A stretch of 64,000 bases of DNA from Macrostomum lignano. Lineage: Eukaryota. The stretch lies in assembly GCA_002269645.1 (NCBI GenBank), contig NIVC01000709.1, positions 1 to 64,000 of the forward strand, given 5' to 3'. The notes beneath the pieces were generated by a model that had not been told where the DNA came from, ran no database searches, and saw only the letters and a program-made list of their open reading frames with translations. Position 1 is the stretch's first letter. Each line of letters begins with the position of its first letter. Below, piece after piece: positions 20,586 through 64,000 of the stretch. The position numbers were made by a program, and so were the translations under genes.

Positions 20586-20715
20586 TTGAAGTTGGGTAAA
20601 AACATTGCATACTTTTTAAGTACATGACAATGATACTTTGCAAACTTGGTAAGTCAACAATGTCATCCAAGTACATGGTTGACTTGGAAAGTTTAGCATG
20701 TTTTTTTTTCCCGGG

Positions 20716-23690: not shown

Positions 23691-24664
23691 TTCTCGTGAT
23701 GCGAGCGCCGCTCTCTGCAATAATAATATTATGACGAGTTTTTGCTCCAAAGTACCATGCAATCTTATATCAAGGAGCACTAAAAGTTACCGTTGAATCA
23801 GGACGCAACACTTGCAAATATCATTCAAACAATTTCGCAATATGTTGTTTGATCTGTGGCGAGCAGTCCAGGTCCTATAGCTAAGAGAGGGACAGCGAGA
23901 GACGAGAAGGGAGCATTTTGAAGGTAGAGATCAGCTAATCCGCAGATTAACTAACCCGCTGCCACCAGCCCGTGCGTCCTGGCTCACCAAACCGGGACTT
24001 TCGAAATCGGGCTTCCGACTAGAGGGGGCTTTGCACTTACTAGTGTCTTTTTGCTGTCAATCTCGACGTCATAGCCGATGATAAGGGAGGGGACTCTGCT
24101 GGGACTTGATCGCATTGGCCATGCAGGTACAGAGGGGACTTGTGCAGGGGATTCTTGCGGTGGCGAGTCCATTGCAGGGGTGGCTACATGTACTAATACA
24201 TTGCTAAATACGAGGGATTGTACTTTTGACCCTCAACGCGCCAACCAGCCTCTCGTAGCGCTGATGATAGGCTAACTCGAACTTCAGAGAACGCATGATT
24301 CATTAACCCGAGCCGCTTGGCGAATCTAGAGTGCACAGAGTACATGTACATCTCTAGCGTATGATTCTGCACTATTGGCAATATTGCTAACTGATTTGAT
24401 AGACTGATCGACTGAGAACTACAGTTAGTTATTCCAAGGCTACTTCAAGTCCTTATAATAAAAAAATTCGACTTTTCATTGCCTACTTTGGGACAAGACT
24501 GAATATTGCTTAATTGCGCCTTAATTTCATCCTGGCTTAGTCACCCTCCAGAGACCAGCTTCGCCCTTCCAGGCAAGCGGCTATTTTATTGCCTTTACTG
24601 TGTACTTTATGAATTTTATCCAGCACAATGGCACGCATCTACATTGGCTGATGTGTAGCCCCTA

Positions 24665-25228: not shown

Positions 25229-27265
25229 ATTAGTTCCATTAGCAGATAGGATTTGGATATTACATTAAATAGGTAAATTAAAGATGTACTTTGCAGAAAT
25301 GTTAACTTACAGAGCAGCTGACTTTTTACTGACGACACGTGCCTGTATGACTGACTTCTTTGACGGCAAAAAATAGCCAAATTTTCCAAATATCAGAACT
25401 TAGTGCTTAGTGCCACGTCCTTCCTATTCTAGCTACGCCCTGCCTTATACAAAGCCTTTAAATAAAACAGTGCATTGTCTCTGGGGGTGGTTGAGGTTCC
25501 TGGTTCTATTATTAGAATTGACGTATGTAGTTCCTAGTTTCCATGACTCATTACTCACTCATAAGGAACAAACGGCCGGGTCTGTAAACTTTAGTTCCCT
25601 GTTTTTGTTTTCAATTCATTTAAGCAGCCTTATAATTTCAGTAACCTTATACTCGTAGTAGCTGTCTGATTGAAAACAAAATGCGAAATCAGTGCCTGAT
25701 TAACATTCGGTACTTTAAAATTTCTACTTGATATGCAAGAACTTTTTGCATGTACTGGGTGTGTTTCTTCACGCACTGGTTTGAATTTATGATCAGGCCC
25801 ACGTCGCGTACAATAGGAGCCTGCTGAGACAATTGGAGGAAGATTTCTGTTGTAAATTTGTCATAGAAGTTGATTTATTAGTAGGTTTAAGTAAGCGGCA
25901 AGTTCGACGTATGATTTCGGAAGATGGCGAACCAAGTAGACCGCAATTTTTACAGATTTCTTTGGAATTTTTACAGATAAATATTTAAATAATGAGATTA
26001 TGGATGAAGTGCATTTTTCCCAAAAGCTCCGTCATGAAAACTGCCCTGAGCGAAATTTGAGGGCTGTGTGAGCTTTCTGTGTGAACTTGTGTGTTACTCA
26101 CGCGATATGATTCATGCCATAAATTTCTGATATGTGCGCTTAAAGGCTCACACAAGGCTCACATTGAGATTTTTTGTACAATAATTATGGACAAAATTAC
26201 TTTGTCCATAATTATTGTGGTCAAATTTTCTTACGAATCAATCATTATATCAATCATTAGAACTTGTAAGGCACACTCGTATAAAATTGGTGACACAATA
26301 AGACTAACAAAGTTGACAATTTTGCTCCATTCTTGGGGTTAGCCGTTATACACGAATTAGATAAGTATTTTATGAATTTATTTTGTGAACCACGACACAT
26401 AAATGTAACATCCTGGTACATTGAATATTAATTTAATACATCAGATACACTCTTGAACTCTGTGTGCAAATTTATACTTATTAGTTAATTGGGCGGTGAA
26501 TTAAGGTGCAAGAGTACAAAACTTCCAACATCGGACAACTCCTAAACCAATTTATAGCTAAGCTTTACATACTACTTATTAATACCAGTAGTGTGAGTTA
26601 GGATCAACAAAAGATGATGAAAAACCTGTGTGACACGGGCTTGACAAAACAGGTGCAGTAGGAAAGTTAACACCTCAGTTGCTAAAGAAACAGCCAACAA
26701 CAAAGTGCATCTGTACCATACTTCTGCAACATCAAAATACAACTAATTAAAAATTTGGGACTACCTGGTTGCCTTAGCAACGATGATTCACCTTGGATAC
26801 AGCATACTGTGCTGGCACATCCACAGCAATCACACAGCAATCCCATGCCTGATGCCAGAGACCGGCCTCACTTTATAGGACAATAATATAATTAATACAC
26901 AATAATACAGCATAATAGATAGAAGCAGAGATGCGACACAAGCGCAGGAAAGAAGCAACCGACATAGTAAAAAAGCAAATTGCACAACAACGATACAGAA
27001 GGGGATGGAGGGTTCGAGATCTTGATGGAAACAGTGATTCACTGATAAAATCTCTTAGCCGAGCGTGTGGAACAGACAAAACGTTTGAAAATGGAAAGCC
27101 AGAGAAAGGATTGCTTTGTAAGCAAAGTCCGCAGCTCTGCGAATATTTAATAAGATCAGTTCATTATAAGTTTTTTGCGTAGCCATGATTTATTTAGAAA
27201 TTCCTGTAGCCATGCCAAGCTGAAATCACAGGGCGGGTCGAAGATTCGAGTGAGTTCAAGGGCGA

Positions 27266-28440
27266 TTCTGAATGATTATTGGGGCCATTCTGAATGATTA
27301 TTGGGGCCATTCTGTATGATTATTGGGGCCATTCTGAATGATTATTGGGGCCATTCTGAATGATTATTGGGGCCATTCTGAATGATTATTGGGGCCATTC
27401 TGAATGATTATTGGGGCCATTCTGAATGATTATTGGGGCCATTCTGAATGATTATTGGGGCCATTCTGAATGATTATTGGGGCCATTCTGAATGATTATT
27501 GGGGCCATTCTGAATGATTATTGATGCCATTCTGAATGATTATTGGGGCCATTCTGAATGATTATTGGGGCCATTCTGAATGATTATTGGGGCCATTCTG
27601 AATGATTATTGGGGCCATTCTGAATGATTATTGGGGCCATTCTGAATGATTATTGGGGCCATTCTGAATGATTATTGATGCCATTCTGAATGATTATTGA
27701 TGCCATTCTGAATGATTATTGGGGCCCTTTCTGAATGATTATTGGTGCCATTCTGAATGATTATTGATGCAATTCTGAATGATTATTGGGGCCATTCTGA
27801 ATGATTATTGGGGCGATTCTGAATGATTATTGGGGCCATTCTGAATGATTATTGGGGCCATTCTGAATGATTATTGGGGCCATTCTGAATGATTATTGGG
27901 GCCATTCTGAATGATTATTGGGGCCATTCTGAATGATTATTGGGGCCATTCTGAATGATTATTGGGGCCATTCTGAATGATTATTGGGGCCATTCTGAAT
28001 GATTATTGGGGCCATTCTGAATGATTATTGGGGCCATTCTGAATGATTATTGGGGCCATTCTGAATGATTATTGGGGCGATTCTGAATGATTATTGGGGC
28101 GATTCTGAATGATTATTGGGGCGATTCTGAATGATTATTAGAGCGATTCTAAATGGTTATTAGGGCGATTCTGAATGATTATTAGAGCGATTCTAAATGG
28201 TTATTAGGGCGATTCTGAATGATTATTTAGGGCGATTCTAAATGGTTATTAGGGCGATTCTGAATGATTATTAGGGTGATTCTGAATGATTATTTAGGGC
28301 GATTCTGAATGATTATTTAGGCGATTCTGAATGATTATAGGGGCCATTCTGAATGATTATTAGGGCGATTCTGAATGGTTATTGGGGCGATTCTGACTGA
28401 TTTTTAGGGCGATTCTGAATGATTATTTAGGCGATTCTAA
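27266..28440. repeat. 22-bp minisatellite (GGGGCCATTCTGAATGATTATT)
   Basis: About 53 copies, drifting to AGGGCGATTC variants at the 3' end; ends ~85 bp from the stop of the minus-strand gene. Confidence 0.96.
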
Positions 28441-28524
28441 ATCTAAAGTGAACCAACAGATAGATTTCTGTAAATAGAATCGGAGCCACAAGGAGCGGTG
28501 ATTCAAATCGAACTCACAGTCCAG

Positions 28525-31500
28525 CTACTGAGCGGGCGGCTGCGGCGGCGGCTGCTGCTGCTGTTGCTGGTTGCCGGCGGGGAACTTCGGCTGCCTCGGC
28601 TGGTAGCCGCCGCGGAACCGCGGCCCGGGACTCCGGTGGTGGAAGCCGGCGCCGAACATTGGCGGCCTGGCGGAATGGTGGTGCGGGTGGTGCTGATGGT
28701 GCGGGTGCGGCGGGCCGCGCGGACCGAACGGTTTCGGCCAGCGCGGGTGCTGCAACGGCAGCGGCGGCGGCCGGTGGTGCGGCTGGTGGCCGTGGAACGG
28801 CGGCCGGGCGGGAGGCGCCGAGTCGTCGTTGACACCGCGGTAGGCGGCCTCCTGTCGGGACAGGTAGTCGTCCAACTCGCGCTCGTCCGCGTCCCCCGGC
28901 CCGCCGCCCGCCTGGCCGCCGCCCAGAAGCTGCCGCTTGGCCGGGGTGGCCTCCGACGCCTCGCCGTCGGCTGCGGCATCGCCTTTCCCGTCGCCATCGT
29001 CTCTGCCGGCGGCGTCGGCCGTGCCGTTCACCCGGCGCCGCTTGACTCCCTGATTGGAAGCGGCGGCAGCGGCAGCTTCAAAAGCGGCCGCGGGGTCTGG
29101 GGCGGCGGCATCGAAGCTGAGCAGGGAGTCGCAGGCGTCAGGCAGGCAGCGCAGGCAGGCACCCGGCCGCAGGCGGTAGGCGGCCAGGGCAGCCGGAGAG
29201 TCGAGCAGTTCGCCTGAGCAGCTGCACGCGGGCCAGTGGATGAAAGCGGAAAGGAGGGGGTGGAGCCCCCGGGGCGCCAGGGGGAGCAGCAGGTGAGAGG
29301 CTGGCCAAGGTGCTGTCCGGCTTTGCTTTTTTATCACCGTTTCTGCTTTTTTATTTTACTCTTGTTCTTTACCATTTCTCTGCTTTTCTAGGCTTGTCTG
29401 CTTCTGTTTTAGTGTGTTTTCAAACTGAATTATCTCTAGCTAACTTATCGATGACTCTTTCTTTCTCTTCTACTCGAAACTTTTATATTATCTTTGTATA
29501 ATAAAAATGCGAGAGATAAAAATGAGAAGTTTTTTTATTTAATGTCACACTAGAAATCAAGCAAGTGGCATCATTCCAGTTAGGATAGAAAAGCTAATTA
29601 ATTGACTACGTTTGGCATATCATTAAACATGATCACAGAGCAGCGGTTATCTAAAACACATATCTGACTGCCGTGCGGTACAGATTGGATTGTGAAACAA
29701 AAAATAAGTATAATAATCAAAATGCCTGCTGCCAAAAATTGGACAAAGGAGGTCCAAAAACACATTAGCAGTTCTAAATGTGTAATGCGCGACACACCAA
29801 AAATGTTTTAAGAAAAAATAAAATTAAACCGGTTGGCAGCTCGCAGTGGGGGATCTGCCAGCTCCAACGGAGGGATGCCAAGCTAATAAGCTGCGAAGCA
29901 CGCCTTCTGGCAGCCTGAGCTCCAGCCACCCTACTCACGCTGCCTACTCAACTCGGCTTGCTCAATTCTATTACTGAGCAGAAGCCCAGCCCGAGAACAG
30001 CCAATCAGATTCATTTATTATCTAGTCACCTCACTCTGTCCGAGCCCAGCCAATCAGAATCATTTACTATCTAGTCACCTCACTCCTTACCCTTAGCCCG
30101 AGCCCAGCCTATTAGAATCATTTACTATCTAGTCACCTCACCCTCAGCCCGAGCCCAGCCAATCAGATTCAGTTTAGTCACCTCACTCTGTCCGAGCCTA
30201 GCCAATCAGAATAATTCACTATCTAGCCACCTCACCCTCAGCCAGAGATCAGCCAATCAGTATAATTCACTATCTAGCCACCTCACCCTCAGCCAGAGAT
30301 CAGCCAATCAGTATAATTTACTATCTAGCCACCTCACCCTCAGCCACAGCCCAGCCAATCATAAACATTTATTATCCAGCAACCTCACCCCAGCCAGAGC
30401 TCAGCCAATCAGTATAATTTACTATCTAGCCACCTCACCCTCAGCCAGAGATCAGCCATTCAGTATAATTTACTATCTAGCCACCTCACCCTCAGCCCGA
30501 GCCCAGCCAATCAGAAACATTTATTATCCAGCAACCTTACCCTCAGCCACAGCCCAGCTAATCAGAAACATTTATTATCCAGCAACCTCACCCTCAGCCA
30601 CAGCCCAGCTAATCAGAAACATTTATTATCCAGCAACCTCACCCTCAGCCACAGCCCAGCCAATCAGAAACATTTATTATCCAGCAACCTCACCCTCAGC
30701 CACAGCCCAGCTAATCAGAAACATTTATTATCCAGCAACCTCACCCTCAGCCACAGCCCAGCCAATCAGAAACATTTATTATCCAGCAACCTCACCCTCA
30801 GCCCGAGCCCAGCCAATCAGAAACATTTATTATCCAGCAACCTCACCCTCAGCCACAGCCCAGCCAATCAGAATAATTTACTATCTAGCAACCTCACCCT
30901 CAGTCCGAGCAAAGCCAATCAGAACTAATTACTACCTAGCCACCTCACTTTGCTCATGGGATAGCTCCATTACAATGATTGGCATTATTTATTAGCCATG
31001 ACAACAAATTTTCGCAGATCATCAGAAGTTTATAAAATCAAAGCTGTTTCTCTAACTAAATCTTTTATACCAACCAGTTGAAATTTTCCAATATCTATAT
31101 TAAAAATCATAAAAGTTATCACTAGTGAGGTAGCTAAAATCAGTAGAAGGGTAAATTTGTTACTTTAGTAGTAAAAAAAGCTACTTAGTGATTTATTGAT
31201 TGCAATATTAAAAGATTATGGTTATATAAGTTGAGTATAGCAGTCTATTGCACAACCTTTTCTTAAACAAAGTTTAGCACTGAGTGACTTACGTTAGCTT
31301 AATATTTTTTCATGAGACTTCTAGACCATCTACATCAGCCCGATAGTTTCACTTCAATATCACTGGTAACACAGATGCATTATAATAATAAGATTCTCAA
31401 CACAACTGTAGAGTTAAAGCACACCGGTACACAGTTAATTTACACTGGCGGGTGGCAACACAAGTCAGTCATCAGCTAACTAAGCGAAGAAATATTTACT

Positions 31501-42709: not shown

Positions 42710-47666
<4,957 letters not shown>

Positions 47667-48215: not shown

Positions 48216-48899
48216 TCACATTGAAATCGCATTCACAGCCTGACGCTTACTGCCATTAAATATTGGGCAGTTGCAAATGTTGGCAAAGTGTAAGTGCATA
48301 TTCTGATTTATGTAAAATATACCGAACGTGTAAATTATGTTACGCCAATAAAAGTGCAAATTAAATTGCATCTCACTGGTCCACCCAGTACTTTGTTTTG
48401 CTCCTTTATTGCATGTACAATTCAGCGCCTGTCTTCTTGTATAGGGAGTTCCGGGGCAGCAGGGAAGCTAGAAGTTTGTCATGCCAAGCAGCCGAGCACC
48501 AATGCAGTGCAAATTGTGAAACCTAGACTAGACTGACTTAGTGTTGCTGAGTTTGATCTAATTTACTATCGGAAAGGCCAACTCAGTCAAGACAGCGAGA
48601 CGCCGGTTGGGTTATAATTTACTACTCGGTGTAACAATTAGTATAACAACAACTTGGAATCGAATTTGCTAAGCGAACAATTTTTTGACGCAGCTGCTCT
48701 CTCGATCGGTTCAACCATGGCTGCCTTGAAGTTCTTCGATTTTGCCTTTGTTGCTATGGTGACCGGGATGCTGATTATTGTATCCGATTATTCCGCTGCT
48801 AAGGAGGCGACGTGTAAGTTTCATGTGCTAATACGATCGGTGCGACATGAGGTATCGGGACTGTGCCTTTAGTCTCGGCTGTGAGGTCTTTAGAAAGTC

Positions 48900-49320
48900 A
48901 CTCCGCTTCGAACTCTTCAAAGCAAGCAATTACTCATCACCCCTGCAGTCAATGCAACGCTGAATTTCCGTCCTGCCATGCCTTGAAGCACTGACGAAAT
49001 TCTTTGATACCCCCGAACGTGGTGGTCCCTGACGCCTGACGACCACGACTTCTTGGAACAGGTCATGACTTAGGTGACGAATCATGTGGTTTCTCAGTAT
49101 GACCCTGAAACAAAAAGCCAGCAGTGGATGGCTATCGCCAGATTTACATATGTAACCTCGATCAGGAAAGGCGCGCACGCCAAAGACGAAGGTTAGTGTC
49201 ATGTTAATCGCTTTTTGACTCCAACGGACTTGTAGTGCCGTCACAAGTCTGTGTCTGAAGGTCAAACTGTTGGCAGTACTTCTACTCGTGCTGCTCCATT
49301 TGGCCCTACAGAATTTCCTG
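48900..49320 (+). mobile_element. Degenerate mariner transposase fragment
   Basis: With a frameshift: GDES...VSQYDPETKSQQW (first catalytic Asp motif), then DSNGLV...VSEGQTV...FY; stops present; TIRs not found. Confidence 0.68.
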
Positions 49321-50624
49321 TAATTTGGGCTCACCTCGTCAGATTTTGGGGCTCCGCATGCTTCAATTCTTATGTTGAATAGTCAGCCTGATGAAGCATG
49401 CAATTGCCAAACTGAACCGCCCTTTCCCAGATGAAGCCGAGATGGACATCATGGAATCCTTCGCTGTGCAGGAAGATGTCCACCACTTGCCGGATATGAA
49501 TCATTTGCATCATCAGCATCATCATCATCGTCACGACGATGAAGACGATCTCGATGAGCACTTGCATCTGGACGCTCCGGCGCCTACGGAGGCGGAGACT
49601 GCGGCGTCGACGACGCCGGCCACCGCAGCGCCCAGCGTCCCGAAATTTCGATCGCGATTCGGTGGTTTCTCCGGCACCGGCAGTTACAAGAAGAAGCTGT
49701 CGCGCAGGTTAGCCGCGACCTTTCACCTGCGAATTCACTACGCTCACGCAGGCCCCTGACTTTCTATAATCGTCAGGCAGATTGAGCCTAATTGGGGTTG
49801 GACCTCATAGATATGATCGAATCCCAGGACAACCTTCTGGCCAACTGTTGTACACACAAGCCCCCCAAATGAATGTGGTTACCTCTGAGCTGTTCCGACC
49901 CTGTGCAAATTCCCTTCATGAGTACGGAGTAATGAATATGCTCGATCGTGAATGTGAAAACCTGACCAGCATCAACATCCGATATCATTCCCGCAGACGC
50001 TGCCGCAAGTACAGGTTCACCGGCCGTAAACTGGTCTGCGTTTCCTACTTCAAAAACTAAACCAACTATCACTAGTGCAGTTGAACTTTTACGAGTATTG
50101 ACAGGAGCTGCTGACTGTGTTCTGAAATGCTTCAAGCTTCAATAAATATACAACACATGTACAATTGCGTTCAAGCATATGCAGCAGTTTTTGTGTAACA
50201 ATATCCTGTCCGAAATTTGTTTTGAGTGCGACCATGCAGTAATAGGACTGTAATTACAAGTCACTAACGCAATTTTGTTAAAAAGAGACGATGTTTTTTT
50301 GCTAAAATGTATAATTTAAACCGTTTTGAGCAGATTGGCCTCATGAAAAAGCGAAACAATGAAATAACTATAAATACCCATGGGTTTCCTCTGCCTAGCA
50401 AGCGGCATCAGATAGCAGAGGAGCGCCATGGGGGCAGCAAAGCGTTCACCAAACGCTTAAAGATGGCTTGAAGAAGATAGCCTGGACTGAACAAGCCGCG
50501 GGTCGGCGTCCTTGATGTTGAGGACTCGGGGGGAAAAAGCGTTGATCAAATCATCGATTTCTGCTGGATTTTCCACGATAGCTTTCCCCATTCATCTTTA
50601 CATAGAGTTTGGCTGTTTGTGACT

Positions 50625-50811: not shown

Positions 50812-51506
50812 CCTGCTGACTGCCTGCTGAGTGCCTGCTGACTGCCTGCTGACTGCCTGTTGACTGCCTGTTGACTGCCTGCTGACTGCCTGTTGAGGGT
50901 CTGCTGAGTGCCTGTTGGATGCCTGCATGCAAGGACTTCTTGCAGATGTTCTTGCCTGCATGTTGACTACCTGGGAGGGCCTGCTGAGTGCCTGCTGAGT
51001 GCCTGCTGACCTGCTGACTACCTGCTGACTGCCTGCTGAGTGCCTGCTGACTACCTTCTGAGTGCCTGCTGACTACCTGCTGAGTGCCTGCTGACTACCT
51101 TCTGAGTGCCTGCTGACTACCTTCTGAGTGCCTGCTGACTACCTTCTGAGTGCCTGCTGACTACCTTCTGAGTGCCTGCTGACTACCTTCTGAGTGCCTG
51201 CTGACTACCTGCTGAGTGCCTGCTGAGTGCCTGCTGAGTGCCTGTTGACTGCCTGCTGACTGCCTGCTGACTGCCTGCTGAGTGCCTGCTGACTGCCTGC
51301 TGAGTGCCTGCTGAGTGCCTGCTGACTGCCTGCTGAGTGCCTGCTGACTACCTGCTGAGTGCCTGCTGAGTGCCTGCTGAGTGCCTGCTGACTGCCTGCT
51401 GAGTGCCTGCTGACTACCTGCTGAGTGCCTGCTGAGTGCCTGCTGACTGCCTGCTGAGTGCCTGCTGAGTGCCTGCTGAGTGCCTGCTGAGTGCCTGCTG
51501 ACTGCC
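50812..51506. repeat. 11-bp minisatellite (TGCCTGCTGA[C/G])
   Basis: Tandem copies running directly into the first recognisable exon of the Gly-rich gene. Confidence 0.94.
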
Positions 51507-54112
51507 TTGGCAACGAGCTCATCAATTCACTCTGCGCTACCGCCGCCAGTGCCGCTTTTTCTTCTCCTGGCCGAGTCCGCAAGCCAGCTGCTGGCAGCGG
51601 AAGCCCCAGAGCGGCTGTTCAAACTCTCCAAGCCAGTCCAGCTGGACAACTCAAGCAGCAACGAGCTGCTCAGCTTCTCAGAGCTCAACATGTCGCGCAT
51701 TTACTGCGCCCATCGCTGCAGCCAGCTGTCCGGGTGCGTCGCCGCCGTCCTCAGCGGCAACCGCAGCCTCTGCCGGGTGCTGCGGCTGCTGCAGTCGCCT
51801 GGACCGGCCGGCAGTCACGTGACCAGGCAACTGGGAGCCGAGCCTGGCGATGAGCTGTGGCTGGCAGAAGATTTTGGAGAAAGGATTGAGCAGCTGCGAA
51901 TGGCTGTCGAGCCAAGTGAGATTTTGTAAATTTTATAGACGCTCAGGTTTAAATCTCAGGTTTTATTGCGTTACATGATAAAAAATGTAACCATTGAGAA
52001 CGATTTCTGAACCTACTTCTCTGGAGTTCTGAGAGCAACGGCCAATATGCTTAATCTGAGGTTGGGGAGGATGTGGAGAGCAGCTTGAGGGTGTGTGAGG
52101 GGGCAGAGCAGCAGCTCGATGGTCACAGCCATGAGGGCCAACCCACAAGGCACAGGGAGTGCACATGCCTTAAGATTAGAAAGTCAGGACCGCTGTACAC
52201 CCTGCGTGAGTGTGTGTGTGAGCTGTGGCGCTCAGGACTTTGACTTCGTGTTGCAAATGATATGCGCTCTGTCTGTACACATTATACTACGGAACTGACG
52301 CGAGTTAATTTTCATCGTCATCATTTTCAGCTGCCTCGAGCTCGCTTTTTACGGCGGTGAACGGCTCTGAAATCAAGTTCAATGGTGGGTAAAACGGCTC
52401 TGAAATCAAGTGCAATGATGGGTAAAACAGCTCTGAAATCAAGTGCAATGGTGGGTAAAACGGCTCTGAAATCAAGTGCAATGGTGGGTAAAACAGCTCT
52501 GAAATCAAGTGCAATGGTGGGTAAAACGGCTCTGAAATCAAGTGCAATGGTGGGTAAAACGGCTCTGAAATCAAGTTCAATGGTGGGTAAAACAGCTCTG
52601 AAATCAAATGCAATGGTGGGTAAAACAGCTCTGAAATCAAGTGCAATGGTGGGTAAAACGGCTCTGAAATCAAGTGCAATGGTGGGTTGATGGTGATAAT
52701 TTTCACTTGCAGTGAGCGGCACCGGACGGAACGGCTCTGTCCAGCAGGCCGTGGTGACCGTCGCCGGCTGCTACCGGATCGAAGCGTTGGGCGCCAAGGG
52801 CGGCTCTTCAGGGGGCAAAGCAGCCAACAAAGGCGCCTGGATGGCCGGCAACTTCAGCCTCGCCGCGGGCACGCACCTGTCCATTGTGGTCGGGCAGAGC
52901 GGCCAACCCGGAGTTTCCAATGGCGGTGGGGCCGGGGGCGGCGGCTCCTTCGTTTATGGCACCGGCGACGGGTTTCTGTACCTGGCTGCTGGGGGCAGCG
53001 GCGGCTCGTCTTGTCCTTTCCTTTGTAAGCTGCAGCACACATGCAGACTGCAGCACACATGCAGACTGCAGCACACATGCAGACTGCAGCACACATGCAG
53101 ACTGCAGCACACATGCAGACTGCAGCACACATGCAGACTGCAGCACACATGCAGACTGCAGCAAACATGTAGACTGCAGCACACATGCAGACTGCAGCAC
53201 ACATGCAGACTGCAGCACACATGCAGACTGCAGCACACATGCAGACTACAGCTCACATGCAGACTACAGCACACATGCAGACTGCAGCACACATGCAGAC
53301 TGCAGCACACATGCAGACTGCAGCACACATGCAGACTGCAGCACACATGCAGACTGCAGCACACATGCAGACTGCAGCACACATGCAGACTGCAGCACAC
53401 ATGCAGACTGCAGCACACATGCAGACTGCAGCACACATGCAGACTGCAGCACACATGCAGACTGCAGCACGCACGCAGACCACAACACCCAGCGTACAAA
53501 TGCGATAGCTTTCTCATTGTCAGACAAGTACACACGGTACTTTGAGAGCCATCCCTCTGGAGTTGAGCCTGAGTCCTTCTGGCTCGATTTTTACACTCTG
53601 CCAAGACTCAGGCAACCATGATTGTCCCCTTCGCCCCTGCAGCCTATTCGGGACAAGCTGGAGAGAACGGCACCGGCACGCACCCCGACAAGAACCCTCC
53701 GGGAGGCGTTCTCGGCCAGCCCGGGCCTTCGAACTCTGCTACCAGTGGCTACTACGGCGGCCCAGGTGCCGGCTGGCTGAGCGGCGCCAACTCGACTCGA
53801 CGTGAGGACAGGTGCGGCGAGGGCGGCGGCGGCCGCGCCGAAGGATGGGTCGGCGGCCGCGGCTACGCCGGCACCGACGGCGGCTTTGGTGGTGGCGGCG
53901 GCGGTGCCTTTGGCTTCAAAAGCAGCTGCGGTGCCGGCGGCGGAGGCGGTGGCTACAGCGGCGGAGCGGGGGCTGCGACCTACGAAAACACTGGCGGCGG
54001 CGGCGGCTCGTTCTGCGCCGGCAGTGGCTGCGTTGGCATCTCGAACGACGGGCGCAACGGCGAGGAGGGACTCGTGGCGATCCGGCAGCTGAGCACCGGG
54101 AGCTGCGCCTGA
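51507..54112 (+). CDS. Probably secreted protein: PAN/apple-like Cys domain + ALK/LTK-type glycine-rich domain, no TM or kinase. Exons ~51507-51915, 52713-53024, 53643-54112; start not resolved
   Basis: Hydrophobic PLFLLLAESASQLLAAEA; CAHRCSQLSGCVAAVL...CRVL; GCYRIEALGAKGG...GAWMAGNFSLAAGTHLSIVVGQSG...GGGGSFV...LYLAAGGSGG; GAGW...GGFGGGGGG...GGGGGGYSGG...GGGGGSF...GEEGLVAI. Both introns phase 1 (cca a|gtgag..tgcag|tg; ctt t|gtaag..cctgcag|cc). Confidence 0.8.
52355..52688. repeat. 33-bp minisatellite before the acceptor at 52712
   Basis: GGTGGGTAAAACGGCTCTGAAATCAAGTGCAAT, ~10 copies. Confidence 0.95.
53028..53472. repeat. 18-bp minisatellite directly after the donor at 53025
   Basis: GCAGCACACATGCAGACT, ~24 copies. 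Confidence 0.96.
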
Positions 54113-54805
54113 AGCCGCGGCTGCATGCCAGACTGCTGGCCAGACACGCGAAGATTAATGAGCATAAACCCAACAAAGGTTATGTTAGTTAGCTTGTTTC
54201 TATCGTGCCCATTTTCATTTTTTAGGCGTTTTTTAAAGAGAAGACAACTCATAGAAAGAAAAAATAAACACCATGTCAGCCATAATGTGAAAAATTTCTG
54301 AGATGTCAAGTCTCATGGGGGGATTACTGAAATCCTGCGGCTGTTGGGGGGGGGGAGATGCTGAGATGCCAAGAGTCAAGTGGAAGTTATTGGTTAGGGT
54401 TATGGTTAAGCCATGGCCTATAGAGCGGCTTTTGAAGCCAAAAGCTCACAGGGGATGCTGATGTCTTAGGCTAGACAGCTGGCTTTCGGTGATTGATGCT
54501 TTTTTGCTTTAAACATCATTTTCCATGCATATCTCTCCATGACTCTTAGCATAGTAACAAATCTAGTGTACTACATGTACTAGAAGTAACTTTGAAGTAG
54601 TTATCTTCTTCAGAGAAATACACATTTCAAATTAGTTTATGTATATTTGTTATTTTAATATCTGAACAGCTAAGATGAACGTTGTCCATATTTTATTTGA
54701 AAAATAATTTCAGTGAGAAAACCAAGATAATAAATAATTATATAAGATAATATTTATTACTTATTTTAAGATAATAACAAACTTGTATGACAGAACCCGT
54801 CACTT

Positions 54806-55526
54806 CTAGCTGGAATACTTGGCGCAGTACAAGCCGTGCTTGCCAAACTTGTAGTGCAGGCACCTCCTGAAATCGGCACACGGCAGTTGAAATTTATATT
54901 TATATTTTGATTGCTGTGTTATAAACAAGGAGAAGGGATAATTTTGGCCCTACCTGTGCGGCCCAGAGACGAAGTGACCCTTGCGACCGGCGGCTCCAAA
55001 GCCGCGCTTGTCAATCAGGTCATCCAGCCAGTCGGGCGTGTCCTCGTCTGCAAAACCGCGGTTGAGACTTTCAAGTACATTCAATTTCGAATGCAGTTGT
55101 AGAGGAAAAAATTACTCTTGGGGCAGGGGGTCGGCAAACTGGGAGAGAAAAGAGATAGGAGAAAGGAGAGATGAGGGAAGGTGAAGAGACGAGACGAGAC
55201 GAGAGGAGGAATGAAATCGATGAAGGGAGAGGAGAGCTGAGAAGAGACGCAAACTTTGAGCGGGCCGGATTGCTTTTGTGAAGGTTCATAAGGACCCCGA
55301 GGGCCGGATAGAGAGGCTTTGCGGGTCGCATGCGGCATTGAAGACCTGGAATTCGTTTCCAGGTGGAATCGTAAAAGAGGTCCTTAGCTTCAGCTTCCAT
55401 TTGTTAGAGCTATCATTATGTCTCAGACTCACCGTCGGAGCTCTCGGCATCGTCGTAAGCCGGAGCAGCGAGTGTGGCTGCTACCAGCGCCAGAAGCAGC
55501 AGACCGTAGAGTGGCAGTTTGCTCAT
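54806..55526 (-). CDS. 82-aa secreted prepropeptide (signal + acidic pro-piece + KR + 36-aa cationic peptide with one Cys pair). Exons 55526-55433, 55047-54954, 54866-54806
   Basis: Spliced: MSKLPLYGLLLLALVAATLAAPAYDDAESSDDEDTPDWLDDLIDKR|GFGAAGRKGHFVSGPHRRCLHYKFGKHGLYCAKYSS*. Junctions gac g|gtgagt..ttttgcag|ac and cac ag|gtaggg..atttcag|g keep frame; TATA motifs upstream; AATAAA at 54753-54758 (minus strand). Confidence 0.8.
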
Positions 55527-55623
55527 TTTGTGCGGAGTGCGTTGAAATTGTTAATCTGCCTTCAGCTTATAGAGCAGGTCTGAGAAGGGCCTCGCCTCAT
55601 TTCTCAGCTAGAAACTGGAAGGC

Positions 55624-55639
55624 TTTTATATTTTATATA
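55624..55639 (-). promoter_or_regulatory. Tandem TATA boxes ~100 bp upstream of the prepropeptide ATG
   Basis: Minus strand reads TATATAAAATATAAAA. Confidence 0.55.
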
Positions 55640-56374
55640 TTTGAGTAGGGCAGAAATTAGCCTTGCCTCAGACACGTGAATAGAGAAGAGAGCTGCTACG
55701 GCACGTGCTTCTGAAGGAGAGGCTGCTTGTTGTCAAGCCAAGTTCTCTTCTGTGTATTCAAGCTATTCGGCGTATTGTCAGCCTCTCTCCCTCATCACCC
55801 ATAGAGCCTTCATGCATAGACAATGGCTGGCCTGTCATAAGCAATTCTGCAGGCGACCAATGTGCTCAACCGAGTTTAGAATAATTATTAAACTCACGCA
55901 GGGCCCGAACTCCATAGTCTCTGGTTGTTATTTTTTCATCTCGCTTCGATTGCGGCCCCCATCATTGTAGGGGGCTGCATCTCACCTGCAGAGTTTGCAT
56001 TGAGGTGGCTGCTGCTTGAGCAGTGATCTTGTACAGAGCTATAACGATTGCTCCTTTTTTTAGCAGCAGAGTTTCGCATGAAGAAAACTGTTATGGCTCG
56101 CGATTCGTAAGTTATCGAATAGAATCAAGTAAAAGGGGCCTCCCGTCATTTTGTTGCTGAGTCATTCCCTGATTTATATGTACATTTAAATTAAAAAACG
56201 TTCTATCATATTTGTACATGTGCTTCCAATTTGAAGCTTTATGGGCAGACAAACTAAAACGCAAAAATTGATTTAAAAAGCAAATCATTCTCTGATTTAT
56301 TTTTTTAAAGTTTGGCTAAAATTGAATTTGAATTTTGGCTAAAATTTCGACTTTCATAGACATCCCTCGATTGT

Positions 56375-56516
56375 TGCAAGCCGGATGCCCTCCCATGCAC
56401 TTTGTCTCCTAATCCTGTGGCATAGAGCTAGGAGACCACGGTGCATCACAGGTCCACCTTCTGCCCTACTTAAATAAGGCGCGGCACAAACTCCTGACCT
56501 ACATGTAACTGCAGGA
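56375..56516 (+). repeat. Direct repeat copy A (~142 bp)
   Basis: TGCAAGCCGGA(T/C)GCCCTCCCATGC...GGTCCACCTTCTGCCCTACTT...TACATGTAACTGCAGGA, matching 59793-59947 apart from a few substitutions and small indels. Confidence 0.9.
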
Positions 56517-57955
56517 CATGCGTCCTACATGCAGTACTTAAACAGTGATGGGCACCGCTAAATTTATTTTTAGCGCCGCTAATTAGCGCTGTCGTTAACT
56601 GATAGAAGAAAAAAATTAGCGATCGCTGATAGCGGGCGCTATTTCTATTTTGAATTTAGCGCAATTAGCGCCGCTAATTTTGAAATGCGCTAATTAATAA
56701 ATATATTTAATATAAACGGAGCTGTTTGCCTTGAAAAACGTCAAGGGCCATTGCTACTGGGGCCATGGCCTTCTTATACTCAAGAAGGAAGGCGAGATCA
56801 TCAGAAACGGTGGTACGGCATTTCTAAACCCCCCATCACCCTGTTGATAGCCTGTCGCTTCGCATCATCGCTTAGAATATCAACTGAGTTGTTGAACGTT
56901 GAATTCTTTGATTAAATGGTTAAATGAAATGAAATTAATCAATAACTTTTTTGCCAACGAATTAAAAGTAGTTTATAAACTTGATAAAGCCACGTTAAAG
57001 CGAGCGTTAAAGTGTCAACCCCAGCCTGTATATGGACATTCAATGTTATCCTGCCGAGTGCATTAATGTGGGCCATAGAGAGTGCGTGAATGCGGTTGCG
57101 GCCATAGACAAAAAAGAGACTGAATACGAGCTATATTATGACTGACAGGTGGTGTATACGACAATAACAAACGAAGCAATTATATAGAAAAAGAGTAGCA
57201 CAATTGCGGCAGTGTGCGTAGCATAATTCCCTATAAAGAGTATATAGATAAAGCTATGTACCTGTAGTACTTATAAAAATGGCTGGCTGGCTGGCTGGAA
57301 GGCTAGATTGGCTATATTTTAAGGACATTGTGTTTAGCACAATTCCCAAATATTGCGCGACATACCAGCTAGATAGATAGCAAGCAGCAAGTAAAAATTA
57401 TCAATCTGCAATTGTACAGCTATTTCACTAGTTATAAATGCCATGCAACATTGAGCGCTAGAAATATTTTAATGCGCTTTGAACCCTTCAACCTGCAGCC
57501 ATGTCCAACCAACCAGCCGACGAACTATAGCAGCTACTGCAAATATTAAAACCAACACTATACTACTAGTCTAATAAACGCTAGCAAAAATGTTATAACA
57601 ATGGGTGTAAGCAATAAAAAGGGATAGAACGCACAACAACGCGCGCAATATGAGGCGCAGATGCATTGTAATTATGAGATGAAAATATTGAAAAATATTG
57701 GGGCCTACATACACATAAAGGAGAGATGAGACAGTTACATCTGACAAGAGCGACGTAAATCTTGTCTTAATTTTCTTTTGTGTCGTGTCTCCTATTTTTT
57801 CTTTTCGTCTATGATCTGGTCCCACATATTGTGACTTAAAAATTAGCCCCCATTTTGTGCCAGTTCTGGTCTGTATACATAGAGCGTTTCAATGGGTTCA
57901 ATTTTATAATAATATTTTCTATAGTTTATGTTCAAAGTTATCAATCAATTAAGTT

Positions 57956-59560
57956 CTACGACCGCTGATGTCGAGCAACAACAAACCTCGACGATCTAGA
58001 TGATGGCGATGGGGACATCTGCTCGATGCAGCTGGATGCCACGATTGCTGCCTGCCGACACCGCCGCGTCTGATCCGCATAGGTTGTCGGCTGCGAAAGC
58101 GAAAGAAACGTCGACGCTGCACCGCTTTCATCTGGCCTGTCAACAACAGTAGTAGCGAGCTGCTGATCATCGGCGGCGGCGGCGGCTTCATCCTCCGCCG
58201 AGCTAGACTTTTGTGGCAGCGGCCTTCGACGTCTACTACCGGGTGGTGGCTGCTGACGACGCTCAGATTGCTTTTGTTGTTGTTGTTGTTGTTGTTGTCT
58301 AGATACAGAACTGGCTTCAGCAGCAGCATCACCGGCGGCGGCGGCGGCACGTCCAGCCACCAAAGCAGCAATCGTCGCCTGCATATTGATCTTATTGGAC
58401 AACATAGAGTCCGTGGCATAATGCCTAAACAGCATGGCCTCCGACGTCTCCATCAGGCTGGCTAGTGATCTTGTCAGCTCAGGATGACTGGCAGTCAAGA
58501 TGGTCGTTTTGGAGCTGCGGAACACTGTCGGCCCTACGCCTCTGCGATTTAACAGGCGGGCAGCGTGCGATTCCACCGCGTGGCTGTATGTGCTGACTGA
58601 CATCTTGTTGCCAGTGCGCGTACAAAATACAAACGGAGATGCTGCGGCGGCAGCGGCGAATGCAGACGAAGAAGCAGCGGCTGTCAACGAATCGCGCCAT
58701 GACCGCAGCAACTTAACGAATGCAGTCGACACGCAGAGGACGCTACATCCGATGGTCTTACGCTTCTTGTGACTAACCCGTCTACCCGGCAGGCTGATGG
58801 TCGAATAGTTGTTCTCCGGATTGTCCATCCGGTAGACACTGTCGGGTTGGATGTAATCCCAGCGCAGTCCAATCCATGGTCGAATGCGTTGCGGATGCTG
58901 CATAGTCGCATGCATGACCAATCCGTTGCGCTGGCTGCTGTTGCTGCTTTGCGCGAGCAGATAACGTATAGTCAGCTAGGATAATGCGCCATTCGCCATC
59001 AGTCAGCCGCTTCTTGCGCTTTTTGGCGCGATGCTCTGGTGCGTCGAGCTTGTAGCGAAAGTCGTGCGCCTGCCGCAGTGTGCGCATTCGTTTCAAAAAC
59101 ATGGCACACCGCTCGCTCAGCACGACAGTCAGCTCGACCGGCAGCTGCATCCAACCGCCGATTTAGTGGCGATGTTTGCCGGGATCATACTCGATGAACA
59201 TTTCGATAAACTTCATGCACTTTAGCTCGTATCAGTGCCTCGGCACGGTTGCGCACAGTCCCGCTGCTCGTACTGGTGCGCGACAGCTCGGCGGCAGCCT
59301 CCGACGGCTTGGCCAGACAATACTCAAAGTCGCGCCGATGGTGAAGCTGACGCGCTCGAGAGATGTTGCCCTGCAGGTCGTCAGCGTCGACATCGACAGC
59401 GGCCGCCGCCACAGTTTCAGCAGATGCCACCGACGCAATTTTGTCAAACAGGGACACTAACAGGCGCAGCAGGGCGTCCAGCGCATCGCAGTAGCCGTCA
59501 ATATTGAGATCCCGGATGCCGCGGTGGATGGGTGCCAGTAAAGATATTCTATTACCTTTA
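57956..59560 (-). pseudogene. Decayed tyrosine recombinase (lambda-integrase fold) gene, probably from a mobile element
   Basis: ORF 57956-58921: PQRIRPWIGLRWDYI (box I RxxExxxLxWxD-like), KKRKT, FVFCTRTGNKM, GPTVFRSSKTT (HxxR-like), LASLMETSEAMLFRHY (box II with terminal Tyr). Upstream pieces in other frames are broken by an in-frame TAA (~59164) and frameshifts. Confidence 0.62.
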
Positions 59561-59632
59561 ACTGGCACAATAGACGCCTGTTGTCGCCGCAGTAAGCCGA
59601 CAGCACGAGGGATGCCCGTTTGACTCGGGGAA

Positions 59633-59666
<34 letters not shown>

Positions 59667-59792
59667 GATAGCGGATAATGCAGGCGTAGCCGCCGCCAAA
59701 GCCGAAGAGGGCGCAGGTGGGGCCGCTGACTGAGGCGCAGGTGGAGCTGCTGACTGAGGCGCAGGTGGAGCCGCTGACTGAGGCACAGGTGG

Positions 59793-59947
59793 TGCAAGCC
59801 GGACGCCCTCCCATGCGCTTTGTTTCCTAATCCTATAGGAGCATAGGAGCTAGGAGACCACGGTGTGCATCACATATGTAGGTCCACCTTCTGCCCTACT
59901 TCAATAAGGCGCGGCACAAGCTCCTGACCTTACATGTAACTGCAGGA
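59793..59947 (+). repeat. Direct repeat copy B (~155 bp)
   Basis: Same orientation and sequence as 56375-56516. Confidence 0.9.
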
Positions 59948-60707
59948 ACACCCCAGATAACATTCGTGACCTTCGCGCCTTTGTCTGAGATAACGGCCAA
60001 ATGAAGGTTAAACAGTGCCTCCTTCTGCGAACCTGCCGACTATAACTGGCGTGGGCTGGGCGCACCATTTCATCCCAATTTACTGTACATTTACATGTAG
60101 CTAATGCACATGATGTACAAAGCAAAGATACATGCATAGAGTCGTGCTCACTAGAAAAACCCTACAATACAAGACCTTTAATTAAAATAGGCTATAATTT
60201 GTAAAGTCGATCTCCTACATGCATATATCTTCAGTGAATGAAATCATGGCGTTATGAATTAAGCCATACACTTCCGACTTTGTAAAATTTCGGGTTTGTC
60301 AAGCAAACCTTTTTATTATCTCCTAAAGCTGCTTCAGTCTAGCTGCCGTATGATCTACATTGCTGCGCGCGCAGCCCTTGTGGGTTTTTGCTGAGACCCC
60401 ACCCCATTTTTATAGCCAAGATCATGCATGGTGCGCAGCGCGCGGTCCTGTCGAAATATACATGTACATGTGCATCCCGTGCAACAATTTATTCTGACGG
60501 CCGCCGTTACCTGGGCGGACCTAGACGTCGATAGATGTTATTTATCGTGATGGCAGTGTACATTGGATCATGCAGCTATACATCTACATGTATGTACGTA
60601 TACAATACAAATTCTTTTAAAAAAATGACTAATAAATTTATAGAAAAAACAAAAAACAAAATTAAAAAAATAAAAAAGTTGGGACAAAATTTTAACATAT
60701 GTACGTA

Positions 60708-61776
60708 CAAGGACTTCTAGACTAACAGGACGTAAAACTCAAAAATCGTGTAATTTTTTGGAGGCCACGATTTCCTGGAAAAAATACACTGCGAAGATAG
60801 GAAAAAATCAGTTTTTCGTCACAAAATCTGTGATTGTATTTGATCTGGGGCAGTGAAGACTACCATTCTTTTAATTTAACATGCACAACATGTTACTCTA
60901 TTATATTTTCATATAGCTGTGTAGTGAAGTTTTCATTTTCATATTGTTTTCACTTTATTTCATAAGCCCAAAGTTGCAAACTCACAAGTGGCATTAGCCA
61001 AACTTTTTGTGTTGTTCTTTTTAAAATAAAGTATAAAAACATTGCATGTAGGTACTCTTAGTCTTAAGCTATTATTGTAGGTTTAGTAACTATACTAATT
61101 CCTAGGCCTACTAGAACTAGACCTATCAGTATCACTACACTATCTAGCCTAATAAGTAATTAAATTTAGACAATGACTTAGAGATTAGGCCCTAGTATAT
61201 TTAGATTTTTTTATTATATATAGATTACCAATAAATAGTTTCATATGGTTGGTTACCTTGGCTTGAGAAAGCTGTATTATCAGTTTTTAAGCCAAGCCTA
61301 TATTTAGGACTAAGATTTAAGAAGAATAGACTTAATCACAAAAATAGGCCCTAACCATTTTTACTAGGTATCTATAAGAAAAAACATTGATTAGTTTTTA
61401 ATAATTTTTATTTTAAAGGCTAAAAAAATTATTATATTACAAATTTGAATAGCTTTTCTTTTCTTGAATTTGATATTTGGCTAGGCCTAATGCCACTTGT
61501 GAGTTTGCAACTTTGGGCTTATGAAATAAAGTGAAAACAATATGAAAATGAAAACTTCATTACACAGCTATATGAAAATATAATAGAGTAACATGTTGTG
61601 CATGTTAAATTAAAAGAATGGTAGTCTTCACTGCCCCAGATCAAATACAATCACAGATTTTGTGACGAAAAACTGATTTTTTCCTATCTTCGCAGTGTAT
61701 TTTTTTCAGGAAATCGTGGCCTCCAAAAAATTACACGATCTTTGAGTTTTACGTCCTGTTAGTCTAGAAGTCCTTG
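60708..61776. mobile_element. Foldback/MITE-like element with ~290-bp terminal inverted repeats
   Basis: 60708-60997 (CAAGGACTTCTAGACTAACAGGACG...GTGGCATTAG) is the near-perfect reverse complement of 61487-61776; ~490-bp AT-rich non-coding spacer. Confidence 0.9.
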
Positions 61777-64000
61777 TGTACGTAACTGTAGGGCGTTTTG
61801 CCATGGGTTTTATGGTTGGTGCGGATAAAGGTGCGGATAAAAGCCAGAATATCCAAGAAGAAAATTACCTAACTTTCATTTTGAAAATCAGGTTCGCTTT
61901 TTGCCCTAAGACCTGTGTGAACTAACCTTAACAGGTAGTTATATCATAGGTAGGATACTAAAATGCCTAGCATTTCCATGATTTATAACCAGTCCAAACT
62001 TTATATTTTAAGCGAAAAAGCTTCAGATTTATCACGAAAAATTCCCACCAGTCAATCATAGCTTAGGTTTTTTAACTACTAAAGAAAGCACGATGCATCT
62101 ATTAAGGTTTTCATTAAAACTCTAAATTTCGAGTACGTTTAAAGATTTGTTAATTTACGAGCATCTTTGACGTACTTCGTGCGGCATGCATACAAAAAAT
62201 CAAATTTTATAAATTCTCTATTTTCCAAGAAAAAATTGCTTTCCAGTTTGAACAGTGAACCATAAAAAATAGATAGATTTGGAATTGGTATATAGGATAT
62301 TTCTATTTCTATATTTCTACGACTACAAGTCTAAAATTGGTTAAAATTAAATGATTTCTGATTACTAGGCCTATTGCAGTTATTAGTGCCAAGTTTTTAA
62401 AATGTAATTGTAGGTCTAGGACTCTTGGACTAGTCTATTTCTTATGTCTATTAATTTAAGTATAATTCCAGTATTTAATCTGTATTTGTTGTAGGCAGAG
62501 GCGGATTTATGAGGGCTGTTAAAAAAATTAGTGTTACTTTTCATTATATCTCTTGTCTTGTTCTGCTGATTCAAATAATGAAGAGCTTGCGTGCCATATT
62601 GCGGAAGGAGGGGTATACGCTGGAATTTTCCGGCGTACACTTGAGTTCTGTGGCGTACACTGGCCTATATTTCTTGGCTGTGTACAATGTGGCATACAGT
62701 GTGGCGTACACAACTGGCGTACAAATTAGGCCTAATATAGAAAATTTTTTGTGCATTTTTCTGTGTTAAGTTATTTCAAAAACCATTTTTTCTGCTACTA
62801 TTTTCTCATTTACTAATCATTTTAATTACTGGAATCGTCATAACAATCCTCATGTTGTTAAATTGTTATCATTTTTTTGTCATTTAAATTTAAATATTTG
62901 TTGTTTTTTGGCATACATTTAGCGTTAAAGAAAGTTGGCATACATTTAAAATTTGTTGGCGTACAATTAAAAATTCAATCAAAATATGTCCGGCGTACAC
63001 AGAAAACCTTCTGCAATATGGCTTGCGTGCATGGCAGCCATTCATGTAAGCTCAGAATTGCGTGCACAGCTGTCAGCAGCTATATATCTTAATAACAGTA
63101 AGTCATATACTGTTCAAATTAGTATTCAAATTAACAAAAAATAGCAATGAATTGAGCTTACATTTGGCATACATGGTGTACATGTGATAAAACATAAAGC
63201 AATATAGTAACAATAATTTTTAATTACGTTTAGTTAGTAGCAACGTGCAGATTAGGCCTATATTGTGGCTAACTGCCAGCTGCCGTGCATGCAATTTAAA
63301 CACTAGGTGAATGGCTGCCATGCAAGCAAATAAAGCACTAGGGCCTAGGTAGATAGCTGCCATGCGTGCGATTCTAAGCTTATGTAAATGGCTGCCATGT
63401 ATGCAAGATCTTTGTTCAAATAATATCATTTTGCATAGATTTATAGTGGCAACTCTCTTCTTTATGTTAACTTTAACATCATTAAAAACAAACAATGGAA
63501 AAAAAGTTATAAATTAAAATATAGCAGGACCTTGACAATAGACTTACAATAAATAAACAAGTTAACAAAAATTTGAAATGGTAGCTGACAAATAGGTAAC
63601 TGGCCACAGTGAATACTGCAAAATGATTACAGTAAATGACTGCAATAGACCTATGAGCCAATGAAAGTTGAGCATGAATCTTGGCTCAGTTGTCCCCCAT
63701 CCCCCAAAGGGTATATATCATACTCCTTTGAGCAACACTTGAATGCATATCTAGGAATTTTGGTGCAGCAAAAGGAGAGAACAAACAGCAATATAGTTGA
63801 AGCCTAGTGTGAAATATTTTGTTGCTTTAAAAGCCATATGCTTTTCCAATTTTTGGGAGAACTTTTCCAAATTTTTTAATTACAACTAGCAATCTAGTGC
63901 CCCCTTTGCTTTAGATTGTGCAATAAACAGAGCAAAAATTACAAATAAATCCATTAAAAATAACATTTTCTTAAGAACCAATTCTTTCTTTAGTTTTATA

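Follow-up and report, generated by a model that had tools for sequence, protein, structure and literature searches.

What does a short locus on the minus strand of a Macrostomum lignano contig, lying between positions 55638 and 54753, encode: a genuine gene or a fortuitous reading frame and, if a gene, a signalling peptide, a host-defence peptide or some other secretion? The DNA analysed (the window) is the first 64,000 nt of this contig (NIVC01000709.1:1-64000, assembly GCA_002269645.1; coordinates identical at 100% identity), in which positions 54500-55900 were read on the minus strand and the proposed exons were then spliced. A first-pass annotation, made from the letters alone, had placed here an unannotated three-exon gene for a candidate antimicrobial peptide (AMP). 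The present study reveals a genuine, transcribed three-exon gene that was annotated from transcripts, is conserved in a second copy and is an orphan in the collections searched. Very probably, it is a real gene for a secreted, convertase-processed prepropeptide. As a best guess at its function, we favor a signalling peptide that is restricted to the lineage and resembles a neuropeptide or peptide hormone over a membrane-active AMP; we put the probability of this role at about 0.4, and that of the full statement including it at the same value.

Re-reading and resplicing the minus-strand sequence gave three exons with an 82-residue product, in exact agreement with the earlier model: the phase-matched GT-AG introns of 385 and 87 nt, the stop codon and all exon coordinates were reproduced to the base. 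The residue features of the product support the layout proposed earlier, namely a signal peptide, an acidic pro-piece, a Lys-Arg (KR) site and a cationic two-Cys peptide of 36 residues (the 36-mer). The features of the gene, all on the minus strand, are as follows.

55623..55638, minus: two overlapping TATA-like boxes, TATATAAAA and TATAAAAG, read directly, 97-112 nt 5′ of the ATG; putative core promoter (55638-55623)
55526-55524, minus: start codon ATG
55433..55526, minus: coding part of exon 1, 94 nt, Met1-Asp31 and the first base of codon 32
55526-55467, minus: predicted signal peptide (residues 1-20), after which the acidic pro-piece begins, within exon 1
55048..55432, minus: intron 1, 385 nt, phase 1, GTGAGT...TTTTGCAG, GT-AG, with a CT-rich stretch
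54954..55047, minus: exon 2, 94 nt, the remaining acidic pro-piece (to 55010), KR and the first 17 residues of the 36-mer; it also carries G-RK and the start of RR
55009-55004, minus: predicted KR processing site, in exon 2
54867..54953, minus: intron 2, 87 nt, phase 2, GTAGGG...GATTTCAG, GT-AG
54806..54866, minus: coding part of exon 3, 58 nt of coding sequence and TAG, encoding RCLHYKFGKHGLYCAKYSS, with the first R completed from exon 2; it holds both Cys codons
54808-54806, minus: TAG stop codon
54753..54758, minus: AATAAA, putative poly(A) signal of this copy, 48 nt past the stop codon

Four lines of evidence, namely composition, reading frames, transcript-based annotation and a diverged gene copy, make this locus more than a chance arrangement. 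The GC content at third codon positions (GC3) of the spliced coding sequence (CDS) is 0.76, against a GC content of 0.49 and 0.36 in the two introns and 0.46 and 0.26 in the flanks, and for GC3 minus GC2 it ranks among the highest 1.9% of 249-nt windows in this stretch, which is rich in repeats. Stops are met in the other two frames and in both intron-retained readings. Furthermore, a search of 5.8 billion protein clusters returned the GenBank ‘hypothetical protein’ BOX15_Mlig024524g2, which is 100% identical over 82/82 residues and is encoded on contigs NIVC01000709.1 and NIVC01002845.1; the GenBank gene call spans 721 nt, exactly from the ATG to the stop of the three-exon model. The GenBank annotation of this assembly was built from genome-guided and de novo transcript assemblies only (StringTie/TACO plus MLRNA150904), with gene boundaries set by trans-splicing and poly(A) reads and open reading frames (ORFs) called by TransDecoder (PMC5730564). 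That the deposited CDS comes from a transcript-only annotation implies that a transcript with both junctions had been assembled. The description ‘unannotated’ was thus wrong, as GenBank holds the product as PAA54900.1 and PAA78047.1 (BOX15_Mlig024524g1/g2), with a sister protein, PAA80608.1. In other words, the gene has already been captured publicly as a ‘hypothetical protein’.

The fourth line of evidence comes from the gene copies. The cluster formed at 90% identity consists of three GenBank proteins: PAA54900.1 and PAA78047.1 (g1 and g2 of Mlig024524), which are identical, and PAA80608.1 (BOX15_Mlig024363g1), encoded on NIVC01000573.1. As M. lignano is neopolyploid and extensively duplicated in sequence (PMC5730564), the copies are alleles or homeologues. 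The copy on NIVC01002845.1 is identical across the whole gene and so is uninformative on selection. The diverged copy on NIVC01000573.1 retains an intact frame and both GT-AG introns (393 and 85 nt), and its protein, 98% identical, carries just two replacements: P5A, which lies in the signal peptide, and P36A, which lies in the pro-piece. At the DNA level, 6 of the 249 coding bases differ, four changes being synonymous and two non-synonymous, which gives a pN/pS of 0.16 (binomial P 0.033 for so few non-synonymous changes under neutrality). Exon 2 holds a single difference, the non-synonymous P36A at 55036, and exon 3 holds two (54845 and 54832), both synonymous; across the 36-mer, there are 2 synonymous changes and 0 replacements. 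Between the same copies, the introns differ at 24/466 bases plus indels (11/381 mismatches plus indels in intron 1, 13/85 mismatches in intron 2) and the 300-nt flanks at 67/595. Exon divergence is 2.4% versus 8.6% in introns and 300-nt flanks taken together (Fisher P 0.0004). From six substitutions only, these comparisons point to purifying selection on the peptide. The first-pass annotation had suggested looking for paralogues with a conserved prepro region and a variable mature region. The opposite was seen: both replacements, the only two, lie in the prepro region, with none in the mature peptide.

Could the locus instead be a young orphan ORF in transcribed DNA, with no selected peptide function and with fortuitous prepropeptide features? 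The ORF is very short, the searches returned no homologue, the signal of selection consists of six substitutions, and the copies do not share their 3′ untranslated region (3′ UTR) or poly(A) signal, all of which would suit such an origin. Nevertheless, the frame, both splice sites and 36/36 mature residues are kept while introns and flanks differ by 3-18%, the GC3 codon periodicity is strong, and a signal peptide, an acidic spacer, KR and a Cys pair are unlikely to meet by chance within 82 residues. Thus, we regard a fortuitous ORF as improbable.

The putative regulatory elements proved less stable than the exons. The TATA boxes and AATAAA are present in the window, but the diverged copy lacks the first TATA box and the AATAAA: TATAAAA at 55630-55624 is shared, whereas the upstream box there reads TATATCAAA, and the 3′ UTRs can be aligned for only about 8 nt past the stop. 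The copies are 95-97% identical from about 430 bp upstream through intron 1, with the upstream homology stopping near 55960-55970, and the alignment is also lost in mid-intron 2 (for the 3′ end, 54724-54798 of the window was compared with 10735-10830 of the NIVC01000573.1 copy). One copy has therefore had its 3′ UTR and poly(A) signal replaced. A 12-codon upstream ORF (MRRGPSQTCSIS) lies at 55600-55562 (minus strand), after the TATA boxes and before the main ATG. Its ATG at 55600 was weighed as the start of the gene but rejected because its frame differs from that of the main ATG and closes before it, and because the NIVC01000573.1 copy has ACTG in its place. As it is absent from the diverged copy, this upstream ORF is probably not functional. 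An Rfam scan of the window returned no RNA family.

The 82-residue product is MSKLPLYGLLLLALVAATLAAPAYDDAESSDDEDTPDWLDDLIDKRGFGAAGRKGHFVSGPHRRCLHYKFGKHGLYCAKYSS. Its leader, residues 1-20, has the features of an N-terminal signal peptide, with K3 in the n-region, an h-region from L9 to L19 (9-residue Kyte-Doolittle maximum 3.18) and a T-L-A|A cleavage context that agrees with the -3/-1 rule (an A-x-A-like site); a helix is predicted at residues 5-19 by AlphaFold2 (AF2). The pro-piece, residues 21-44, carries a net charge of -11. Dibasic sites, as in prohormones, occur at residues 45-46 (KR), 52-54 (G-RK) and 63-64 (RR); cleavage at them is predicted, and the Gly before RK is a potential amidation signal. 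The counts given earlier for the 36-mer are right: 7 K/R, 4 His and no acidic residue, with Cys19 and Cys31 corresponding to C65 and C77 of the precursor. Its net charge is +7 and its pI is 10.15, so that the pro-piece at -11 faces +9 for KR plus the 36-mer. The Cys loop is LHYKFGKHGLY, 11 residues, and the protein ends with RR followed by C-X11-C-AKYSS and the stop codon. Predicted monoisotopic masses are 3976.97 Da for the oxidised 36-mer and 2101.99 Da for the cyclic 18-mer that would follow RR. Those computed for other possible products are 3232.57 (28-mer), 1580.80, 836.39, 420.21 (GFGAA-NH2) and 2682.06 (pro-piece).

From these residue features, we infer secretion, cleavage and a disulfide as follows. 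The signal peptide (about residues 1-20) would direct the precursor into the endoplasmic reticulum, where the Cys65-Cys77 disulfide would close the 11-residue loop into a β-hairpin. In the secretory pathway, a subtilisin-like proprotein convertase would cut after Lys45-Arg46, shedding the net -11 pro-piece and releasing the basic C-terminal 36-mer. Further cuts at G-RK and RR may yield GFGAA-amide, GHFVSGPH and the cyclic 18-mer. The product would be secreted and would act extracellularly.

Whatever its role, the peptide appears to be an orphan. A word-indexed search of 5.8 billion clusters retrieved only the gene's own product and the 98%-identical sister copy, and HMMER, run in full over 1.84 billion representative proteins, retrieved only the query cluster. 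Neither Pfam, searched up to E 10 with the precursor, the 36-mer and the pro-region, nor NCBIfam gave a match. In the PDB, a sequence search with the 36-mer gave one chance match at E 3 and no solved AMP or toxin of at least 20 residues. When the precursor and each exon were compared with the whole window by permissive tblastn, only the gene itself came up and no paralogue. The earlier statement that no homologue was recognisable is thus confirmed in the representative proteins, Pfam, NCBIfam and the PDB. This orphan status is to be read with the caveats that short ORFs are often unpredicted in other assemblies and that other Macrostomum genomes lay outside the search. As far as visible in these sequences, the family would amount to one gene per genome copy in one species.

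The layout of signal peptide, acidic spacer, KR and basic peptide does not discriminate between functions because it is common to antimicrobial and neuropeptide precursors. Several other features favor a signalling peptide. Each (sub)genome copy has a single gene, with no paralogue family; the mature peptide does not vary, both replacements falling in the prepro region; the peptide is hydrophilic, with a hydrophobic moment (μH) no higher than that of shuffled sequences; and the precursor closes with a cyclic peptide that a dibasic site immediately precedes. Somatostatin, allatostatin-C and urotensin-type precursors are built in this way, with a C-terminal Cys-loop peptide after a dibasic site. 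In planarians, prohormones were sought by a signal sequence plus multiple dibasic sites (PMC2953531), and a PC2 homologue of M. lignano is expressed in the nervous system (PMC4490696). The first-pass annotation had listed a neuropeptide precursor as its alternative. This alternative fits at least as well as an AMP. An acidic pro-piece before KR is ordinary in neuropeptide precursors, too.

Under the host-defence explanation, a hairpin of charge +7, rich in His and Gly and stapled by a disulfide, would be neutralised by the acidic pro-piece until KR cleavage, after which the freed peptide would bind to microbial envelopes and damage them. The charge balance of -11 versus +9, together with the pI of 10.15 and net charge of +7 of the 36-mer, agrees with it. 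M. lignano lives in bacteria-rich sediment, which we also count in its favor. In contrast, amphipathicity was not found when μH was compared with composition-matched shuffles, the linear moment being an imperfect test for a hairpin. For the 36-mer, the values at 100 and 170 degrees are at or below the shuffle mean (fractions of shuffles with a μH at least as high, 0.55 and 0.96, respectively). For the 18-mer, these fractions are 0.18 and 0.71, the 100-degree value being above the shuffle mean, though not significantly. Mean Eisenberg hydrophobicity is about 0, and the grand average of hydropathicity (GRAVY) is -0.61 for the 36-mer and -0.40 for the 18-mer, i.e., hydrophilic. Furthermore, we see neither a multigene family nor a variable mature region, the mature peptide being identical in the diverged copy; among solved AMPs and toxins of at least 20 residues there is no match, nor is there a meaningful fold match; and a literature search turned up no Macrostomum antimicrobial peptide paper. 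The proposal of a new AMP or toxin family therefore lacks specific support, as the peptide is not amphipathic and shows neither a paralogue family nor the variable-mature pattern. Every test run leans against a classical membrane-active AMP, and we consider a host-defence role rather unlikely.

Structure prediction bears on the same choice. A single-sequence AF2 model, with a mean predicted local distance difference test (pLDDT) score of 61, shows the leader helix and strands at residues 55-59, 63-70 and 72-79. Block-mean pLDDT of the strands is 66-74, with about 73-74 for the strands 63-70 and 72-79. The hairpin turns at G71, the two Cys lie on paired strands, and GHFVS adds a third strand. 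This moderate-confidence model, in which the Cys-bearing strands are paired, supports the ‘disulfide hairpin’ proposed earlier. The model also hints that a longer form, and not the 18-mer alone, may be the folded unit. The inclusion of RR within the predicted sheet could likewise suggest a functional long form, as the host-defence explanation would have it. A Foldseek search of the PDB with the model returned nothing at E 0.001 or better; as evidence on family membership, AF2 and Foldseek were set aside as uninformative.

A third possibility is an exocrine gland product, either a seminal-fluid (prostate) peptide or a component of adhesive, releasing, rhabdite or mucus secretion, in which the active part would be the cyclic basic peptide or the acidic pro-piece. 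The protein is an orphan, small, secreted and lineage-restricted, as such a product might be. The Drosophila sex peptide also has a C-terminal Cys-X11-Cys geometry, a resemblance that we keep as a lead. In planarians, the expression of prohormone-like genes extends to adhesive glands, the copulatory apparatus, the gut and sub-epidermal cells (PMC2953531), and M. lignano is reported to have dozens of uncharacterised prostate-limited secreted transcripts (PMC5977470). On the other hand, both gene IDs, Mlig024524 and Mlig024363, are absent from the complete table of published in situ patterns, which includes the Weber 2018 prostate candidates (PMC7336406). Several dibasic sites with a Gly-RK are more typical of regulated-pathway prohormones, and the product is without the repeat or low-complexity structure known from adhesive proteins. 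We hold a gland product to be rather unlikely too.

One known peptide family shows a local resemblance. The gene could be a highly divergent pedal-peptide/orcokinin-type precursor in which DWLDDLIDKRGFGAAG corresponds to a NFDEIDRSGFGFN-type motif, with KR inside the peptide. DLIDKRGFG matches the crayfish orcokinin DEIDRSGFG, a sequence confirmed in PMC5656890, at 6/9 positions, a score reached by 6/5000 composition-preserving shuffles, and FGKHGLY resembles FGKGGAY of the starfish myorelaxant peptide (189/5000 shuffles). However, the orcokinin match was picked post hoc among hundreds of known peptides, so that its nominal P of 0.001 is not significant once corrected. Pedal peptide/orcokinin precursors contain many peptide copies that are flanked by dibasic sites and do not contain them (PMC5656890), whereas here the motif occurs once, has KR inside it and is preceded by no cleavage site; besides, separate pedal-peptide-like genes exist in planarians (PMC2953531). 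This explanation is therefore very improbable. A resemblance of CL-Y..G-H..C to CCHamide was kept as a lead.

Among these explanations, we favor a signalling peptide over host defence and over another gland secretion. Several points weigh against this choice. RK sites are seldom cleaved in invertebrate precursors, and the GFGAA-amide product is doubtful for this reason. The pairing of a +7 peptide with a -11 pro-piece is a classic arrangement in host defence. The predicted three-stranded sheet spans the RR site as a single unit of a 28- to 36-mer, which, as far as the model goes, argues for something closer to a small defence- or toxin-like mini-protein than to a set of short neuropeptides. 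The test of selection rests on just six substitutions. In the clusters, the representative proteins and Pfam at E 10, no similarity to any known neuropeptide family was found. Finally, no expression record was found for the gene: Mlig024524 and Mlig024363 were not found in the main texts of the searchable literature, and no paper therein quotes peptide fragments of the product. Both IDs are also absent from the supplements of PMC5730564, PMC5816591, PMC7336406, PMC5946080, PMC12896417 and PMC12732829, of which several of the larger files were covered in part, making this weak evidence.

The remainder of the window offers a varied neighborhood. No gene is called in the 8.5 kb upstream of the peptide gene (55527-64000). 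Downstream of it lie an annotated gene for a 168-residue protein with no Pfam match (48648-50060, plus strand) and an annotated gene for a 642-residue DEAD/Helicase_C protein (44806-47666, plus strand), with two minisatellite arrays within its span. Farther away, at 20616-23780 (minus strand), an uninterrupted ORF of 1054 residues carries stonustoxin-type MACPF/CDC-like, stonustoxin helical and fibronectin type III domains as well as a P-loop GTPase-like region (weak AIG1, septin and AAA_16 matches). From its domains, it looks like an intronless gene for a pore-forming, immune-type protein. Directly downstream of it is an 82-bp tandem array at 19418-20585 (14.3 copies, 98% matches). Overall, the window holds about 25 to 30 minisatellite arrays, mostly with periods of 10-84 bp and one of 4 bp, typically 0.3-1.2 kb long. 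Many long mechanical ORFs and odd Pfam matches are such arrays read in frame, as at 12903-13796 (Baculo_PEP_C and antifreeze matches) and 52712-53545 (ALK_LTK glycine-rich match). Examples of the arrays are the following.

1183-1782: minisatellite array
9191-10154: minisatellite array
12918-13774: minisatellite array
27260-28442: minisatellite array
29987-30948: minisatellite array
44147-44770: minisatellite array
46567-47335: minisatellite array
50812-51507: minisatellite array
53030-53480: minisatellite array

M. lignano is a transgenic model, tractable by RNA interference, for regeneration and sexual selection. To our knowledge, its peptide signalling and innate-immune effectors are almost uncharacterised. 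The gene is a clean, short and testable candidate with three near-identical copies, their CDS identity exceeding 97%. If it encodes a neuropeptide, an orphan ligand would be added to the flatworm repertoire; if antimicrobial, it would represent a new scaffold. A bolder version, in which the 36-mer founds either a flatworm-specific host-defence class (a His/Gly-rich, non-amphipathic cationic mini-sheet with one disulfide, silenced by an anionic pro-piece, which would be the first AMP described from Macrostomorpha) or a new disulfide-cyclised neuropeptide family with its own receptor, is unlikely. For now, its product stands among numerous small secreted proteins that are lineage-restricted and labelled ‘hypothetical’; the kind of gene is familiar, and its interest is modest pending expression data or peptidomics. 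The practical lesson is that transcript-based annotation had already caught it.

Comparison with known systems places the gene among several precursor types. Like those of the dermaseptin superfamily and of invertebrate AMPs, the precursor combines a signal, an acidic pro-piece, KR and a cationic peptide with approximate charge neutralisation; unlike the dermaseptin superfamily, it has no homologous prepro region, its family is not expanded and its mature region is not hypervariable. A one-disulfide hairpin of the kind found in thanatin and arenicin is predicted here by single-sequence AF2 at a mean pLDDT of 61, whereas the 36-mer is non-amphipathic, hydrophilic and without a PDB sequence or fold match. 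A local motif, D-x-I-D-x-x-G-F-G, noticed post hoc, resembles that of pedal peptide/orcokinin, but it occurs here as a single copy interrupted by the KR cleavage site. Somatostatin, allatostatin-C, urotensin II and MCH offer the same succession of signal peptide, spacer, dibasic site and terminal Cys-loop peptide. The number of ring residues between the Cys is 11 here versus 10 in somatostatin-14 and 6 in allatostatin-C; the somatostatin and allatostatin-C core motifs FWKT and YFNPISCF are absent, and a five-residue AKYSS tail follows the second Cys. From flatworm prohormones, the gene differs in having no similarity to annotated proteins, its putative products being unlike known FLP or NPF peptides. 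Nevertheless, the spp/npp prohormone genes of Schmidtea mediterranea (PMC2953531) resemble it, in that their precursors are small and bear a signal sequence, several dibasic sites and an amidation motif of Gly before a dibasic pair, and the processing enzyme PC2 is present in M. lignano as well.

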